Assembly: GCA_025594325.1 (NCBI GenBank)
Contig: JANHCV010000002.1
Location: 1,240,001 to 1,304,000 of the forward strand
DNA: 64,000 nt
Direction: 5' to 3'
From: Blastocladiella emersonii ATCC 22665
Taxonomy: Eukaryota; Fungi; Blastocladiomycota
Part shown: in pieces, positions 1,530 to 19,160 of the stretch
Layout of the letters: the number at the start of each line of letters is the position of its first letter
Numbering within the stretch: position 1 is the stretch's first letter
Made by a program: the position numbers and the translations under genes
Notes under the pieces: generated by a model
Seen by the model: the letters and a program-made list of their open reading frames with translations, nothing else
Databases searched by the model: none
Told to the model about the DNA's origin: nothing

Positions 1530-2886
1530 TTATACAACCTCCTTTTCCTTGTCGCTCTCATGCAGAGGAACCGGCTGCCCCGAGTTAGACACGCTCGCTG
1601 CGCTCTTGGCCACGGCCGCGACGATCGGGGCCGTGAACACGGGGTAGCTCGCGGTCGAACCCCGCCGCGACACGATGATGTCCGACGCTTTGAGCTCGGT
1701 CGCGGCTCCCGTAGACGAGGTTCCAGCTACGCTCACCGCACTCTTGGCGATGCCCAGCGGCGGCGCCACGACCATCGTATGACCCGTGATGGAACCGCGG
1801 CGAAGCGTCGAGAAGCCTGGTCGAGGCTGGTCACCGTTGAATCCAAGATCGGCCGTCTTGCAGCTCGACGAGCGCCCACGGATCGACTTGGGAGAGGTGC
1901 TGCTCGCAGTGTTCGATGCAGCCGAAGCGGCGGCTCTCGCGGCCCACATACCGCCCGCGTTCTGAGCGGCAAACAGGACGTACATGGCGCCCGCGTCGAC
2001 GGCGTTGGCCAGGACCAAGATCGAGGTGATGAGGTAGATGACGATGGCGGCGACGAGACGCGTCGAGTGGTCGCGAAGGAGCCGGCGCAGCGGGTTGTGC
2101 GATCCGGTTCCACCAAGGTCACTCACTGCCCGTGCGCACGACCGTCGGGCCGCTGCTGCCGGCAAGGTTGTTGTCGCTGCTCCGAGTATGTGCAAGCATG
2201 GGCGGAGCGAAGACGAAGAGTACGCCGGCGTGGACGGCAAACTGGAGGAACTTGCCGATGGCGTTGGTCCACAGCTGCGTCGTCCCGCACTTGCCGTTTG
2301 GCGCCTCGTACATCGGCTTCCAATATGAAGAGTAGACGAGAAAGCCCATGGACACGAGGTGCAGCGCGCCGAGAATCAGACGCGCGACGTGGCGCGGACT
2401 CCGGATAGACTTGCCAACGGCCGAGTGCTTGAACGAGGCGACCGAACTGCGGCAGCGGAGTGTCGAGCCAGGAGCAGGCACGAGCGGGTCGCCACCGGCC
2501 GTGGTCTCGGAGCTTCGTCTTGTCGGATCAAACGTGAACAGCAGGCGCGACCAGGTGGTTGGCAGCGTGTGCGTGCTGCGAAGGATGAGCACGGATGTGG
2601 CTGTGAGCTGGAACCCGAGATAGAGCGAGGTCGAGATGAAGAGGAAGGCATGACAGCCGATGGCGATGGATGCGCTGGCAGCGGAGATGACAGCAGCCGA
2701 TCCGCATTGGTTCGCGAGATGGAGCACCGCCGCAACAAGTTGGAGGATCGACCACGGCCGCGCGCGACTGCCGGCCGGAGTCCGAGCCAGTTGCTTCAGC
2801 GCGACGGCCACGAGGTAGGTTCCAATCGGGATGGACGCGCCGATAGCTAGGAGAGTCGCGTCGCGGCTAGCCGTCGATGTATCCAT
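1530..2886 (-). CDS. 7TM GPCR-like protein, copy 1 (apparent +1 frameshift in the TM5-TM6 loop)
   Basis: ORF 2886-2119 (TM1-5) and ORF 2240-1530 (TM6-7 plus tail) align collinearly with the intact paralogues at 8021 and 9664 (FQLTATSVLI.RST, G.C..TQLW.N..GK, LRRLLRD..RL). The frames must switch between about 2190 and 2119, and no usable intron was found. Confidence 0.7.
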
Positions 2887-3342
2887 GGTCGGTGATCAGA
2901 AATGCTCCATTTGCAGAGAGAATGCATTGCTTCAAGTTTGGTCAATGTGATCGAGTGGCACAGGAGGAGACATGACAGGCTTGCCGTGCACGGATGTGTG
3001 CGTTGACAGGCTTGGACAACCGGTGCGAGACATTCGGTGCGAGACGCGTCAAGGCGCGCCCACAACGCGACACCTCAGATGCTTCGCGAGGAGCAACCGT
3101 GTCTCCCGTCCACACCGTCCGCTCATTCGGGAAGGCGTGGTACGCTCGTCGTGTCCTGGAGCTCGGGACCGGGGCAAACCCGTCTCTTGATCGCGCCGTG
3201 ATCGCGCCGTGATCGCGCTCCGTGATGGCGAGGCGCATGTCCGCGTGCACGGCGAGGGAGTGACTCGCAGCCGAGTCGCTGCCGACTTCGTTGCTCCCTC
3301 TCCGCTATACCATGAAACAAAGCAACTAGTCCATGTAACTCG

Positions 3343-5741
3343 ATGCATACCAACCGCAGGCCTCCAAAACCATCATCTACGGCGGCCAATGTGCCCATGA
3401 CGCGAATCGGGGGCGGGTCCTCGACGGCGCCGCAGTTCCGCGTTCCTGCGCTTCCCGGCGGCGGTAACACTGGTCGCTCTACTCCGACACCGCTTACAGG
3501 CAACGGTGGTCGCTTCACTCCGACGCCGCTCGCAGACTTGCGCGATGGCCTGACCAACTTGTCGCTCTTGGCTGTCGTGACGGGAATGACGGCCGCCAAG
3601 GTCGGGAACAACAACAACGCTTCCATGATGTTGCTGCTGCACGACACGTCCCGTCCGCCAATCGGCCCAGGTGGTGGGAACGCGGTCCGCCTCATGATTT
3701 TTCGGAAATCCATCGCGCAGATCCCGGACGTCCGCGAAGGCGATATCGTGCGCGTCACTGGAGCCCATGTACGGCGAGCTGTATTGCCAGGTAGATAACG
3801 CACTGTTATTGACCCCATGTCGTGCGAACCGATAGGCTAAAATCTATCAGGGGAAGATGCAGGCTGTCGTCTCTCACACCTCGCGCGACGCCAAACTCTC
3901 AGTGATTTCGACTGAGCCGGGCGCGGCGCTCGCGAATCGACCTCAATCTGATGCCGTGGCCGCCGCCTGGCCGCCATTCCCGCTGCTGCGCTCCGACTTT
4001 TCCGACGTCGAGGCCATCCGCGAGTGGTGGCGCCTGCTCCGCAACCCCGTGCGTCCGTCGCAGCTCGAGTCACCCGGCGCCTCGCAGTCACCCGTGCTCG
4101 CCGGATCGCTGTGGGGCCCAGCTACTCCCGGCCAGGATACGACGCCGTCGCGCGGCGCATCGAGCGGGCTTGGGCTCGGGCTCACGCCCAGACGAAATTC
4201 GCCGCTCGCGGTGCAGTCCCCGCTCGCGCGACACTCGACGACGCCGAGTGCGTCGCGCCGCCCGCTCGTCACGGACATGGGCGTCCTACAACCGGGCTCG
4301 TTCTACGACGTGGTGTGCCAGGTCGTCGAGAACCAGGGGATCGTCGTGCCCAGCGCCATCGTCGTCGTCACCAACTACACGTTTCTTCCGCGACCCGAAA
4401 TGTACGCTTTGACTCGCATTTGTCATCGCACCGCCGCTCACCCGATCCGCTACCGCTAGGGTACACGCGCACACGGCCGACCGCACCAACTGGATGGGCC
4501 TCTCGCTGCTCCCCGCGGCCATGCAGATCCGTGCTGTGTTCTGGGACGAGGTGATCCCCGCGGCGCAGTCGCTTCACGTGGGCGACGTGGTCCTGTTGCG
4601 CAACGTGCGCGCCAAGCAGCAGGGCGGCGGCGCGGCGCTCGAGCTCGTCCTCCACGGCGAGCGCGCGCGAGACTCGGTCACCACGAACCGGGTTCAGGTG
4701 CTCGACGCGACGCCGGGTCCCGCAAACGAGCACTACCACCTCGTCAAAACGCTCGAGCGGCAGCGCGACATGCTCGTCGACACGCAGGTCCAGGAGGACG
4801 TCGTCGTCGCGCGGCCCGATCGTACTCCTGCTCGCGCGCGTGACGAAGCAAGCGGCCCGGCGGGTGCACCATCACCAAAGCGCGCTCGCGTCGATTCGAG
4901 TCCTGAGCGCTCGCCGGCCTCCGCCGAGGACGACAACACGCTCACCGAATTTGCGACGGGTACGTCTGGAGCGCATTCCTTTCTTTTCGCGACAACGGCT
5001 GACATTGCAGCGCTCACTCGAACGTAGTAACCTGTCACGCGTACATTCCAGCAACGCCGCTGGCCGAGGTGATCGGCGACGAGCGCGTCCCATACAAGTA
5101 CCGCTGCCGCGTGCGCTTCGTCGGCATCCAGCCCGCACGGCTCGCTGAGATGACGAGACTCGTGTGCATCGCGTGCAACCGCGAGTGTCCTCGGCCTCAA
5201 GAAGGTTCCGACGCAGCAACTTGCTCGTGTGGTGGCGCGGCCGCGTGGGTGTACCGGTTCGCGGTGACGGTGACTGACGGCTCAGGCGCGCAAGTCCAGG
5301 TCCTCGTCGCTGGCGAGCGCGGCGCGGCGCTACTCGCGGGTATCCCGCCAACCGAGTACGTAACGGTCATGGACTCCATGACTGGCTTGGCTTGCAGCTC
5401 ACTCGTACAACGATTCGTGTAGCCTGACTCGTGACGGCGAGTCCGCGCAGCGGCTTCTCTCTCGACTCGCGTTCGTCCTGTACGGCCTGCACGAACTCGA
5501 CCCGACGGCCGTGGCGGCCATCTGCGCCGGGTCCGCGCCCATCTCGTCGCTTCAAGACTCGGTCGCCGAGCGAAACGCGGGCCTCGTCGCCGCGCCATGG
5601 TGTGACGTGTGCATGCTCGGCTACCTCGCGAGCGCCGACCCGTCCGAGGCCATGGACAGCGACGACGCGGGCCGCCGGGATCCCAAGACTGGCCGACGGA
5701 TCCGCTACCAGTTCTTTGACACGAGCATTCCGGACCCTTGA
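3343..5741 (+). CDS. POT1: telomere ssDNA-binding protein POT1 (OB1-OB2-OB3 with Zn-binding Cys), 4 introns
   Basis: OB1: LLAVVT...LHDTS...RLMIFRKSIAQIPDVREGDIVRV. OB2: VVTNYT...FWDE...GDVVLLRNV. OB3: PYKYRCRVR, CIAC..CSC, RFAVTVTDGSG, WCDVCMLGY...RYQFFDT. Intron 3769-3835 (GTACGG..TAG) restores RVTGAHAKIYQGK. The start codon is uncertain. Confidence 0.85.
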
Positions 5742-14224: not shown

Positions 14225-17200
14225 ATGGATCAACCGTCGGCAACCGAACGCCGCCATCCGCGCATCCGCGCCGCCGCCGCCGCGAGGGCGCGCGCCAAGG
14301 CTGCTGCTGCTGCCGCCGCGGCTGCTGCGACTTCGCCGACCGCCGACCAAGTCACGGACACCCTCGCCGCCGTCCAGCTCGATCATGACGCGGAAGGCGG
14401 CGAGCGCAAGGCGACGCTGCTCGACGTGCTCGACGTCGACCTGCTGCTGAACCACCTGTACTTCTCGTACCTCGACCCCAAGGCTTGGGTGCGGCTGTCG
14501 GCCGCGAGCCAGCGCACGCGTCGCGCCATGGAGAGCATCCCGGCAGACCTGCTGATGCCGCGTGCGTCGACGCGAGCGCGCGCGCTGCACGACGCGGCCG
14601 TCGCGGGCAACGTGGCGCGCGTGCGCGAGCTGCTGCAGTATGTCGACCACGCGGACGTGCGGTTCCACCGCCGCGAGCCCGCGCTGCTCGCCGCCGTCAA
14701 GCACCTGCAGTACGACGTGGTGCGCGCCCTGCTCGCCGCGGGGGCCTCGCCCGTCCGCAACCACACCATTTCGCGCGGGAAACGCGCCAACGCGTACCAC
14801 ACGGCCATCAAGCTCGGCGACGCGCCCATGGTGCGCATCCTGCTCGAAGCGCCCGCTATCAAGAAGCGGCCCAACGTCGCCGTCAACCTCAAGGGCGCCG
14901 CGTGCCCCATGACCGCCCTGCACGCCGCCGTCATGAGCCGGTCCGTCGACGTGGTCGAAGCCCTGCTCGCCGCGGGCGTCCCGCTGCTGCCGACGCTGAC
15001 GCAGGCCGAGGTCGACGCCAACCCGCCGCCGCCGCTGCCGGAGCTCCCCGAGCGCCCTCCGCCGGCGCCCGTCGATTCCAGCCACCCGTTCCGCACCGCG
15101 CGCGCCGTGCTCAACGCCAAGGCCAAGCGCGCCAAGCGCGAGCGCCGCGCCCCGGATCTGCCGGCGACGCGCGAGTCGGAGGCCGCGCTGCTGCTGGGCC
15201 TCGCCTCGCTGTGCCGCAGCACGACCATGGTCAAGTGGCTGTTCGCGCAGGGCGTGCCGACCGCGGGCCACCCGCGCACCTCGACCTTCCACGGCCTGCT
15301 CGAGGGTCGCGCGGCGCTCATGATTGCCGTCGGCCACGACAACCTGCCCATGTGCAAGCTGCTCGTCGAGGGCGGTGTGCCGCTCAACCCGACGCCCGAC
15401 GCGACCGCGACGTCGGGCCGTTCGGGCATGCGGCCCATCGACCTCGCCCTCGACCCAGCACACGGACGTGCTCAAGTACCTCCTCGACGCGCACACGGCG
15501 CAGAACTGTGTCGCCGGGCACATCTGCGGCTGGGACTCGACGCTCAAGCCGGGCGACGAGCGCGAGGCCAAGTCGTTCCTCCAGTGCGCCACGCTGCGCG
15601 GGTACATGGAGGTCATCAAGACGCTGCTCGACTACGGCGCCCAGGTGTCCACGCCCGCGAACCCGTGGATCGAGCCCACCGGCCCCGCGAACCCCGCTGC
15701 CCTCGAGCGGATCCCGGGCGTCGACGACGTCGGCGACGGGGGCTACGTGCTGACCTGCTTCGCGCTGCGGTCGCAGCACGTGGCGATCGTCGACCTGCTG
15801 CGCGGCCGCGGGCACGCGATCCAGTGGAACGCGGCCGAGCACCAGCGGCAGCACGCCGAGGCGCGCGCGGCCGCCAGCACCGACGACGACCCGCTGGCGC
15901 CGCTCCCGCTCCTCGCGCCCGTGTACCCGGCGATGCCCCTGTACGGCAAGACGCCGCTGCATTTCGTCCTGTCGTGGTCGCCCGACAAGTGGGTCCCGCT
16001 CGCCGACCGCATGCTCGACGAGGGCGCGCTCGTCAACGTTGCCGACCACAACGGCCAGACGCCGCTCGATCTTGCGCTCGCTGCCGTCGGCGTCGGCATC
16101 GACCACCCGGTCGTCAAGCGGCTCATGGCCCACGGCGTCTACGCGTCCCACGACACGTACGTCGTGCTCCTGCACCACGCGATTGCGACGGACGACGAGG
16201 GGCTCCTCGCCATGGTTCTCCGCGCGGAACCGGCCAACGGGACGCGCGCGGGGCCTAGGGACCTCTCGCCCGCCGAGATCGGGGCCACGCATCCGCCGCG
16301 CGAGATGCTCCAGAAGACGCAGCGCCGGCCGGCCATCGACTGCGACCTCATGGTACTCTTTCTTGCTCTCGATTCGCCCGAGAATCGTGTCTCACCTCCC
16401 CCTGCGCGCGGCTAGGACGTCTCGCCGACCCTCATCAGCCAGTTCCCGGCCATCATCAAGCCGCTCGACCCCAAGTCGGAGCACACGCACGAGTCGCCGA
16501 AGCGCAACGACCACGGCCGGCTTGACCTCGCCGACTCGCGCGTGAGCTGCGTCATCACGCCGCTGATGCGCGCTCTGTTCCTGCGCCGGTCGGGGATGGT
16601 CTGCAAGCTGCTCGACGCCGGCGCGAACCCGAACCTGGGCGCCGTCGGCGAGCGCGCCGTCAGCGCCTTCTGCCCGCCGCCGGGCATCGCCATCTCGCGG
16701 TCGCCGCTCGTCCAGGCCATCGCCATGGCCGACCGCGATATGGTCGACCTGCTCCTCGCCCACGGCGCGAGTTTGCGCGTCGGCGAGCACACGGTCACCA
16801 AGTGCGCCAACGCACGGCCCGGCGACCGGCCTAACCACAAGGACCCGGCGCGCCGCAAGCAGACGCGCGGCAGCGGCGGGAACGCGGAGAACGCGGCGTG
16901 GTGGTCACCCGGGACCGACGCCGGGTGCCGCATCACCGCCGTCAAGTTCGCCCGCGGCCTGCTCACGTTCGTCGCCCAGCGCGAGCAGAAGAAGGCGCAG
17001 AACTTGGCCAAGAAGTCGGACGTGGCCGAGGACGCGGACAAGGCTGACGGCGACGCGGACCAGGCGGCAGCTGACGAGCCCGTGGCCGCGGCGGCGCCGT
17101 TGTCGACGACCCCATCACCAGTCGCTGCCGTCTCGCCACCCGTCGCGCCCGCAGCGCCGACGTCGTTCGACTTTGGCAGCTCCGACACCCCGTCCTTCGG

Positions 17201-17888
17201 CTTCCCCGCGCCCACCGTGCCCTTCGCCTTCCCGTCCGCCACCACGACGCCCGCGGGCACCTCCATGTTCACGCTGCGCGACCGCGCGCCCGCCGCCATC
17301 GACGACGAGCCGCACGGCGACTTAGCCGGCTTCTCGATCCGGGAGCTCATCAACGCCGACCGGTCCCTGACCTCGGCCCAACTGCGCCCGATCGTCGAGC
17401 ACCTCGTCGCCCTCGACGCGCCGTACACGTGGCTGCGCGTCCCGTGCGAGCGCGCGTGCCCGCTCGCGCGCCGGTTCGTGGGCGTCCGCGGGAAGGAGTA
17501 CGACGAGAGCGCACGGTGCCTCGACTGCGAGATCCCGCGCGCCGGAGGCGCGCAGGGGGGCGCGGGGGCGAGTCCCCTTGGCGCGCGGGCGAAGCGCGGT
17601 GGGGCGGCAGCGCGGCCGGCGACGGCGGCGGGGTTCGCGTTTGGGTCCGCGCCGTCAACGACGTCGGCGACCAAGGCCGAGGACACGGGTGCGACTGCAG
17701 CTGCCTCGCCGGCGCCAGCATCCGCCTTCTCGTTCGGCGCACCGAGCGCGAGCACCGCGGCGCCGGCCACGTCGTTCGCCTTCACGTTCGGCGCGCCCGC
17801 TACGTCGGGATCACCGTCGGCGAGCCCGTTCGCGTTCACGTTCGGCTCGCCCGCTGCACCGGCGACCACCAAGAAAGATGAGCAGTGA
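14225..17888 (+). CDS. F-box-like + ankyrin-repeat protein with C-terminal FxFG repeats and a Cys4 finger (apparent +1 frameshift at ~15455)
   Basis: F-box-like LLDVLDVDLLLNHLYFSYLDPKAWVRLSAASQR. Many ankyrin repeats (ALHDAAVAGN, ALHAAVMSRS, GKTPLHFV, GQTPLDLAL). Intron 16353-16415. Tail has SFDFG, GFAFG, FSFG, FTFG x2. The frame switches inside the repeat PIDLALD/QHTDVLKYLL. Confidence 0.75.
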
Positions 17889-18157: not shown

Positions 18158-19160
18158 TTACCAACCGCGCTGGGCAAACTTCTGGTTGTCGAGGAGCGAG
18201 TCGCAGTTGATGCCGACCATGGCCTCGCCGAGGTCCTCGGAGACGGTGGCGAGGACGCCCGCGTCCTGGTAGTGGGTGACGGCCTGGACAATGGCCTTGG
18301 CGCGCTTGATCGGGTCGCCCGACTTGAAGATGCCCGAGCCGACGAAGACGCCGTCCATGCCGAGCTGCATCATGAGGGCCGCGTCGGCGGGGGTGGCCAC
18401 ACCGCCGGCAGCAAAGTTGACGACGGGGAGGCGGCCGAGCGCGGCCGTCTGGCGCACGAGCTCGTAGGGGGCGCCGATCTCCTTGGCGTAGTTGTACATC
18501 TCGTCCTTGGACATGGACTTGAGCTTGCGGATCTCCGACAGCATCGTGCGGCCGTGGCGCACGGCCTGGACCACGTCGCCGGTGCCCGCCTCGCCCTTGG
18601 TGCGGATCATGGCGGCACCCTCGTTGATGCGGCGCAGGGCCTCGCCGAGGTTGCGCGCACCGCACACGTAGGGCACCTTGAAGCCGTGCTTGTCGATGTG
18701 GTACGTCTCGTCGGCGGGCGTCAGGACCTCGGACTCGTCAATGAAGTCGACCTTGAGGTGCTCGAGGATCTGCGCCTCGACAAAGTGGCCGATGCGGACC
18801 TTGGCCATGACGGGGATGGTGACGGCGGCCTGGATCTCGCGGATCATCTTGGGGTCCGACATGCGGGCGACGCCGCCTAGACGTCACGGAGGGGAAGCGG
18901 GTGAGTTGCTGCTCGTTGAGCGGTCCGGGGGGCAAAGCGCACGAACCGTCCTTGCGGATGTCGGCGGGGACGCGCTCGAGGGCCATGACGGCGACGGCGC
19001 CGGCCTCCTCGGCGATGCGGGCCTGCTCGACGTTGACGACGTCCATGATCACGCCGCCCTTGAGGTTCTGGGCGAGGCCGGCCTTGAGCACAAACTGCTC
19101 GTGGACCTTCTGGTAGTCGGCGTCGCCGTTGGCGGTGAGGTTGGCAGCGGAGAAGGACAT
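18158..19160 (-). CDS. SNZ1: pyridoxal 5'-phosphate synthase subunit PDX1/SNZ
   Basis: [35 protein letters not shown] across intron 18946-18877, [32 protein letters not shown]. Confidence 0.97.

Follow-up and report, generated by a model that had tools for sequence, protein, structure and literature searches.

The window analysed here is a 64,000-nt stretch of high-GC DNA (contig C11:1240001–1304000) from a 32.65-Mb genome assembly of the blastocladiomycete fungus Blastocladiella emersonii ATCC 22665 in 21 contigs, the number that PMC9730499 gives for this strain; positions without a contig name are those of the window. On its + strand, the gene at 14225–17888 is H9P43_002356, which NCBI names a 'hypothetical protein'. 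Its product combines three parts: a short three-helix F-box-like head, a long ankyrin solenoid and a disordered S/T/A/P-rich tail in which FxF and FxFG motifs flank a helical module.

The coding sequence runs from an ATG at 14225 to a stop codon at 17886–17888 on the + strand and is not a single open frame, being interrupted by a frame break at 15451/15452 and by one 63-nt GT–AG intron. Coding piece A (14225–15451) begins with the start ATG and an Ala-rich N terminus, continues through the F-box-like head and ends among the first ankyrin repeats, at the frame break; it is supported by its open reading frame (ORF), Pfam Ank matches, a G+C content at third codon positions (GC3) of 0.92 and agreement with the public protein model of 1,172 amino acids (aa), P0001. 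Piece B (15453–16352), in frame +1 relative to piece A and part of the ORF 15324–16415, continues the ankyrin repeats (Pfam Ank matches, GC3 0.96). The intron that follows (16353–16415, +) is in phase 0, ends in an in-frame TAG, has a GC3-equivalent of 0.52 and is spliced in the public model. Its position and phase are kept in two paralogues, at lengths of 67 nt and 60 nt, and this conservation supports its splicing and marks it as the real intron of the gene. The last exon (16416–17888) is one ORF that holds two ankyrin repeats, a conserved cap segment (16893–16979, +), an acidic/Ala linker, the tail and the stop, with a GC3 of 0.82–0.97 in every sub-segment. The same range holds across all coding sub-segments (0.82–0.96 in the tail), versus 0.52–0.62 in the intron and the flanks or untranslated regions. 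We conclude that H9P43_002356 is a real and probably intact gene, whose predicted product is soluble and about 1,200 aa long.

The tail carries two groups of Phe-containing motifs, both on the + strand. Cluster 1 (17163–17234) consists of SFDFG (17163–17177), SFGF (17193–17204) and FAFP (17223–17234). Cluster 2 (17631–17846), set in S/T/A/P/G spacers, consists of GFAFG (17631–17645), AFSFG (17724–17738) and two copies of FAFTFG (17772–17792 and 17826–17846). Within the 287-aa tail, 16 of the 19 Phe residues lie in FxF pairs, forming nine FxF and five FxFG motifs, counts that were reached in none of 20,000 composition-preserving shuffles; the number of FG dipeptides is six (p = 0.002 in the shuffles). 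A preliminary description of this DNA, made from its letters alone, had reported both FG clusters, and every motif was found where it had been placed, in a non-random concentration (0 of 20,000 shuffles). The C2 paralogue, a full-length family member described below, has six FxF (p = 6.5e-4) and two FxFG motifs in its tail, and the paralogue Par3 has three and none, respectively. The tails of H9P43_002356 and the C2 paralogue are 46% identical, with divergent spacers and motif positions that are maintained; three of the four cluster 2 motifs are in place in the C2 paralogue, and SFDF is kept in the C2 paralogue, in Par3 and in copies from a tandem cluster of the family. Motifs that keep their positions while their spacers diverge behave as functional linear motifs do, and comparison within the family indicates that the nucleoporin-like FxFG form is a feature of H9P43_002356 and its closest paralogue.

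Because the last exon is one uninterrupted ORF together with two ankyrin repeats, the tail is physically continuous with the ankyrin coding sequence. On DNA evidence, we reject the possibilities that the tail is a gene of its own or an ORF that arose by chance from the high GC content: it shares its ORF with those repeats, has a GC3 of 0.82–0.96, and recurs with the same architecture and intron in two paralogues. The tail is also conserved among paralogues of the same species. A recent microsatellite origin of the FG clusters was likewise rejected, as Tandem Repeats Finder detects no DNA-level tandem repeat there. Searched by features, the ESM-Atlas yielded no more than generic ankyrin clusters with exon 3, and no match to the tail.

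At the other end of the protein, the preliminary description had proposed an N-terminal F-box-like motif. Its location was borne out, as a helical head at 14411–14542 (+) with the sequence ATLLDVLDVDLLLNHLYFSYLDPKAWVRLSAASQRTRRAM (ATLLDVLDVDLLLNHLYFSYLDPKAWVRLSAASQRTRRAMESIP), to which sub-cut-off Pfam matches, hhalign, AlphaFold2 (AF2) and fold searches all contribute; its F-box identity is probable in a divergent form. In a Pfam scan of eight family heads, F-box and Ank were the sole families seen, with weak PF00646 matches in four of the eight (best E 0.0013). Aligned by hhalign against 20 genuine F-boxes from the same genome, the eight family heads gave a probability of 58% over 26 columns (pairwise E 1e-4), in a register from the end of helix 1 to helix 3. 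AF2 modelled the head with helices at 13–19, 21–29, 33–42 and 44–51 and a predicted local distance difference test (pLDDT) score of 67.7. When this model was searched with Foldseek, F-box:Skp1 chains made up 10 of the top 11 PDB matches, yet with E values of 0.55 or higher, and in an ESM-Atlas shape search all 10 rows were F-box families with varied C-terminal domains (template modelling score 0.43–0.51). Other searches were uninformative or negative: a geometry-only fold search of the head did not separate F-boxes from generic helical repeats, the head profile matched only ankyrin proteins among PDB sequences, via its last 35 columns, and none of the 70 matches in a genome-wide PF12937 scan (E ≤ 1) fell in the H9P43_002356 family. 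Taken together, we consider it probable, at close to three chances in four, that the head is a divergent F-box fold, and Skp1 binding would be predicted for it. The genome has three Skp1-domain loci (C15:2012492–2012704, C1:792512–792658 and C1:3199651–3199794); divergent families of the F-box-like kind could have more than one Skp1 as partner.

Between head and tail, the ankyrin-repeat solenoid with its inserted loops spans 14573–16784 (+), across both the frame break and the intron. The many ankyrin repeats that had been proposed from the sequence are confirmed by Pfam at gathering cut-offs: Ank_2 scores 70.8 bits in piece A (cut-off 27.3; E 1.4e-19), Ank, Ank_3 and Ank_4 are likewise above cut-off there, and further matches in pieces B and C bring Ank_2, Ank, Ank_3, Ank_4 and Ank_5 to all three pieces. 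The solenoid is 59% identical to that of the C2 paralogue. A loop inserted into it (window ~15200–15260, P0001 residues ~325–345) carries the basic cluster NAKAKRAKRERRAPD (KAKRAKRERR), present as ERRARRVRRPLD in the C2 paralogue; the cluster resembles a classical nuclear localisation signal and may add nuclear import.

The two motif clusters of the tail are separated by a family-specific helical module (17328–17540, +; FSIRELI...LVALDAPYTW, then C-x3-C-x19-C-x2-C) that is common to 11 loci of the genome. Its C-terminal part is the Cys4 module TWLRVPCERAC-x19-CLDCEIPR (17427–17540, +), which the preliminary description had located correctly and had likened to the zinc fingers of Nup153 and RanBP2. 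The likeness does not hold. The RanBP2-finger profile PF00641 has no match at E ≤ 10 on the protein or its tail, and none of its 21 matches in the genome (E ≤ 1) is at the H9P43_002356 locus. The spacing here is W-x4-C-x3-C-x19-C-x2-C versus W-x-C-x2-C-x3-N-x6-C-x2-C (WTCxxCxxxNxxxxxxCxxC) in the genome's own fingers, and the AF2 model of the module has a pLDDT of 52, falling below 50 over the cysteines, and no beta-hairpins. Nor are the ligands conserved: in an eight-member alignment, ligand 1 is present in seven members, ligand 2 in six and ligand 3 in four, and ligand 4 is Cys in two and His in Par3. Only H9P43_002356 and the C2 paralogue have all four Cys; the pattern in Par3 is C, C, C, H, and ligands 3 and 4 are both absent from four of five tandem-cluster copies (one, L045, keeps ligand 3). 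A RanBP2/Nup153-type finger is therefore rejected on the absent profile match, the wrong spacing, the unconserved ligands and the lack of predicted hairpins. A tail-module profile searched against PDB and Pfam returned noise only (mL65, E 0.009; DUF7563, E 0.01). At most, the Cys4 element appears to be a lineage-specific elaboration of the helical module that may bind zinc in a sub-clade.

H9P43_002356 belongs to a family with at least 13 copies in the genome, some of them broken; the genome has 14 matches to the head (E ≤ 10) and 11 to the tail module. The family signature is a head of the form LxLLDLAHVDxVWxxLCLRYLxPKDCxxLRxxSRAxRxAIDxLP, ankyrin repeats, SFDFS, the module RELDRYPxLTLDxLDxIIxxLxxHxAPLxWxALPCHLV, a second FDFS and FQWP. 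The full-length C2 paralogue (L003, C2:823000–832999) shares head, ankyrin body, intron and tail with H9P43_002356 and sits in lower-GC DNA (locus GC 0.60), its GC3 being 0.71 versus 0.92 for H9P43_002356. Beside it, that locus also holds a Harbinger-like DDE transposase ORF (positions 699–1484 of the locus) and an ankyrin ORF with a PLELIEDILIL head (2625–4205, –). A third full-length member, more distant, lies 57 kb upstream of H9P43_002356 (L017, C11:1193676–1197100, –); its intron, 60 nt long, falls at the same codon, its Cys module is of the C, C, C, H form, and its motifs are FDF and FQWP, not FxFG. Further along the same contig, the tandem cluster at C11:1972000–2038000 (L006–L011, L013, L018–L021 and L043–L049) contains at least 10 copies of the order head, ankyrin, SFDFS and helical module. 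Several of these are truncated or contain stops, and one open frame (L008) joins the tail of a copy to the head of the copy that follows.

Searches for relatives led back to the gene itself. Single exons and P0001 served as queries. With the tail, an exhaustive HMMER search of 1.84 billion representatives recovered nothing beyond the cluster of the tail itself, and word searches, run for the tail and for the whole protein, yielded H9P43_002356 alone. A word search with the first exon of the C2 paralogue returned P0001 (59% identity) and generic ankyrin proteins only, with no protein matching the C2 paralogue itself. Judged from these sequence comparisons, the family appears to be undescribed, restricted to B. 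emersonii and tandemly expanded, in a birth-and-death pattern.

The frame break within an ankyrin repeat of H9P43_002356 (15451–15452, +) bears on whether the gene is intact; neither this break nor the 63-nt intron figured in the preliminary description of the gene. We examined it with Logan contigs from three DNA runs of the same sample (X1, X2 and X3). The run X1 contig (~146x, 11.8 kb) has a GA dinucleotide inserted behind 15451, giving an in-frame ...ALETQHTDVLKYLL that agrees with the ...ALEEKSIDVFNFLL of the C2 paralogue, and thereby restores an intact ankyrin repeat. Runs X2 (10x) and X3 (3x) have no GA and are the same as the window. The HiFi assembly was polished with Pilon using Illumina GAIIx reads (PMC9730499). 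We infer that the 2-nt loss at 15451 is a polishing or culture difference and not the mark of a dead gene; being contradicted by the deepest run, the frame break of the reference is probably no feature of the intact gene. If the frameshift were instead real in the organism, H9P43_002356 would be a decaying family copy, a pseudogene or the source of a truncated product only. The absence of GA from the window and from the two low-depth runs agrees with such decay, as do the several clearly broken copies of the family, and the 2-nt deletion may reflect the Illumina reads that entered the polishing. Decay is nevertheless unlikely, as the missing GA is present in the 146x contig and there gives a perfect ankyrin repeat; moreover, GC3 is 0.92–0.97 on either side of the break, no further stops occur over ~3.6 kb, and the sequence past the break is still 59% identical to the intact paralogue.

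The public gene model bridges the same break with an 82-nt 'intron' (15377–15458, +), such that P0001 reads KLLVEGG directly followed by HTDVLKY, and this splice drops 28 residues of an ankyrin repeat. Because 24 of 25 third codon positions in this segment are G or C, and because its homologous counterpart in the C2 paralogue is coding and in frame, the 82-nt intron is most likely an artefact spanning the frame break. The public gene model requires correction.

How might these parts work together? We give roughly even chances to the protein being a modular adaptor that combines target binding by the ankyrin repeats with recruitment of a Skp1–cullin–F-box (SCF) ubiquitin ligase by the head and affinity of the FxFG motifs for transport receptors or the nuclear pore, the last two roles being predictions. 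In such an adaptor, the ankyrin solenoid would bind a target protein, and the head would recruit the Skp1–cullin ubiquitin-ligase machinery. The FxFG motifs would provide weak, multivalent affinity for importin-beta-type receptors, for NTF2-like domains or for the FG phase of the pore, and this affinity would place the adaptor at the nuclear envelope or pass it across. A stronger version, in which the family members are lineage-specific SCF substrate receptors whose working FxFG tails enter the FG phase of the pore or ride karyopherins, making a pore-resident or self-translocating ubiquitin-ligase adaptor independent of any nucleoporin, we hold to be rather unlikely.

Several observations weigh against the modular adaptor. 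The head scores below the Pfam gathering cut-off both for F-box (PF00646, 12.7 bits against a cut-off of 20.5, E 0.12) and for F-box-like (PF12937, 13.1 bits against 24.3, E 0.083), and confidence in its AF2 model is moderate. F-box helix 1 starts with a conserved L-P-x-E that contacts Skp1; of the 20 genuine F-boxes taken from the genome, 16 have the L-P, as against none of the eight aligned family heads, which have LDVLDVD or LDLAHVD instead. The F-box proposed in the preliminary description is plausible. Further, true FG nucleoporins have far more than five FxFG motifs; in distant family members SFDFS, FDFS or FQWP takes the place of FxFG, such that the ancestral motif may serve another partner; and the searches described above found no relatives outside B. 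emersonii and no orthologues.

Much of this would fit an ankyrin scaffold whose linear motifs are private to the family and which is unconnected with SCF or the pore, its head being an N-terminal cap or an oligomerisation helix bundle. The FxF and SFDF motifs would then bind some other partner, such as the protein's own ankyrin groove, an NTF2-like domain like that of G3BP, or an FDF-type pocket, and FxFG would be a by-product of drift in a G/S/A-rich tail. The retention of SFDFS, FDFS and FQWP, not FxFG, by distant paralogues (with no FxFG in Par3), the sub-cut-off F-box scores with their absent L-P and the non-specific geometry-only fold search all favour such a scaffold. It fits less well that, whenever a sequence-aware or shape search of the head gave a family at all, that family was F-box (weak Pfam matches, hhalign, the Foldseek top list and 10 of 10 ESM-Atlas rows), and that the four C-terminal motifs have the classical FxFG form at a spacing of 12–26 aa, as in the genome's own FG proteins. 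We regard the scaffold as possible, if doubtful. A genuine structural FG nucleoporin, that is, an analogue of Nup153 or Nup358 that acquired ankyrin repeats, is suggested by the FxFG motifs flanking a Cys-rich element in superficially the order of Nup153. It is highly improbable, given that the protein shows neither homology to a nucleoporin nor a match to zf-RanBP, that canonical multi-finger FG proteins are already encoded on C3 and C21, and that, in contrast to core pore components, the family has many copies, evolves fast and is broken in part.

Those canonical proteins are the closest point of comparison within the genome. Two loci, C3:550981–552180 (L054) and C21:1361624–1363054 (L055), encode FG proteins whose fingers are of the canonical RanBP2 type. 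One ORF, of 932 aa, combines six WTCxxCxVxNxxSAxxCxxC fingers and 15 FG motifs; the other, of 1,761 aa, has at least four fingers and 37 FG motifs. These two proteins are likely to be the real Nup153/Nup358-type proteins of this fungus. Their GFSFG and GFAFG motifs in S/T/A/G spacers are similar to those of H9P43_002356, whose AFSFG and FAFTFG motifs, 12–26 aa apart, match them in form and spacing. A third finger protein, at C11:1588013–1589122, has few FG motifs. H9P43_002356 resembles Nup153 and Nup358 (RanBP2) more broadly in placing FxFG in low-charge S/T/A/P/G spacers around a Cys-containing element, and differs from them in its C-x3-C-x19-C-x2-C arrangement without a PF00641 match, in having just five FxFG motifs, and in having no nucleoporin targeting domains and no detected homology.

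Other proteins share single features of the architecture. Nup50/Nup2, AGFG1 and Nup42/hCG1 combine a few FG or FxFG motifs in a disordered region with a folded domain, sometimes a zinc-binding one, and their motifs touch transport receptors; none is known to have ankyrin repeats or an F-box-like head, and no homology to H9P43_002356 was found. The ANK-PRANC proteins of poxviruses and Orientia join ankyrin repeats and an F-box in the reverse order, with the PRANC domain C-terminal. Legionella AnkB (PDB 5k35), which was among the matches, provides a precedent for F-box plus ankyrin. Both AnkB and the ANK-PRANC proteins are small and bacterial or viral, with canonical L-P F-boxes and no known FG tail, whereas H9P43_002356 encodes a 1,200-aa eukaryotic protein with a divergent head and an FxFG tail; no sequence homology to them was detected. 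ZC3HC1/NIPA is discussed as an F-box-like protein with zinc fingers that resides at the nuclear basket (PMC8393659, PMC9582634), and so is a precedent for an F-box-like zinc-binding pore protein. The C3HC fingers of ZC3HC1 are BIR-like; the protein is not known to carry ankyrin repeats or FG motifs, is conserved across eukaryotes and is unrelated to H9P43_002356 in sequence. We found no paper in the literature that combines F-box, ankyrin and FG repeats in one protein. What appears to be new here is a family, restricted to one species, that joins known modules in a new combination and whose function is predicted.

FG motifs are generally viewed as working parts of nucleoporins. If the modular adaptor is correct, conserved FxFG motifs on a ubiquitin-ligase-linked adaptor that is not a nucleoporin would imply that enzymes can be targeted to the permeability barrier of the pore via a short FG tail. 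The gene would also offer a compact natural test case, with five motifs in one protein and fewer or none in its paralogues, for the minimum number of FG motifs needed for receptor binding or partitioning into the pore. Independently of the mechanism, the analysis documents an undescribed, species-restricted and tandemly expanded F-box-like/ankyrin family in an early-diverging fungus.

In the window, the neighbour of H9P43_002356 is a convergent gene for a PdxS/SNZ-type pyridoxal-phosphate synthase (18158–19160, –), 270 nt from the H9P43_002356 stop. It consists of two overlapping ORFs in different frames, which indicates a short intron.

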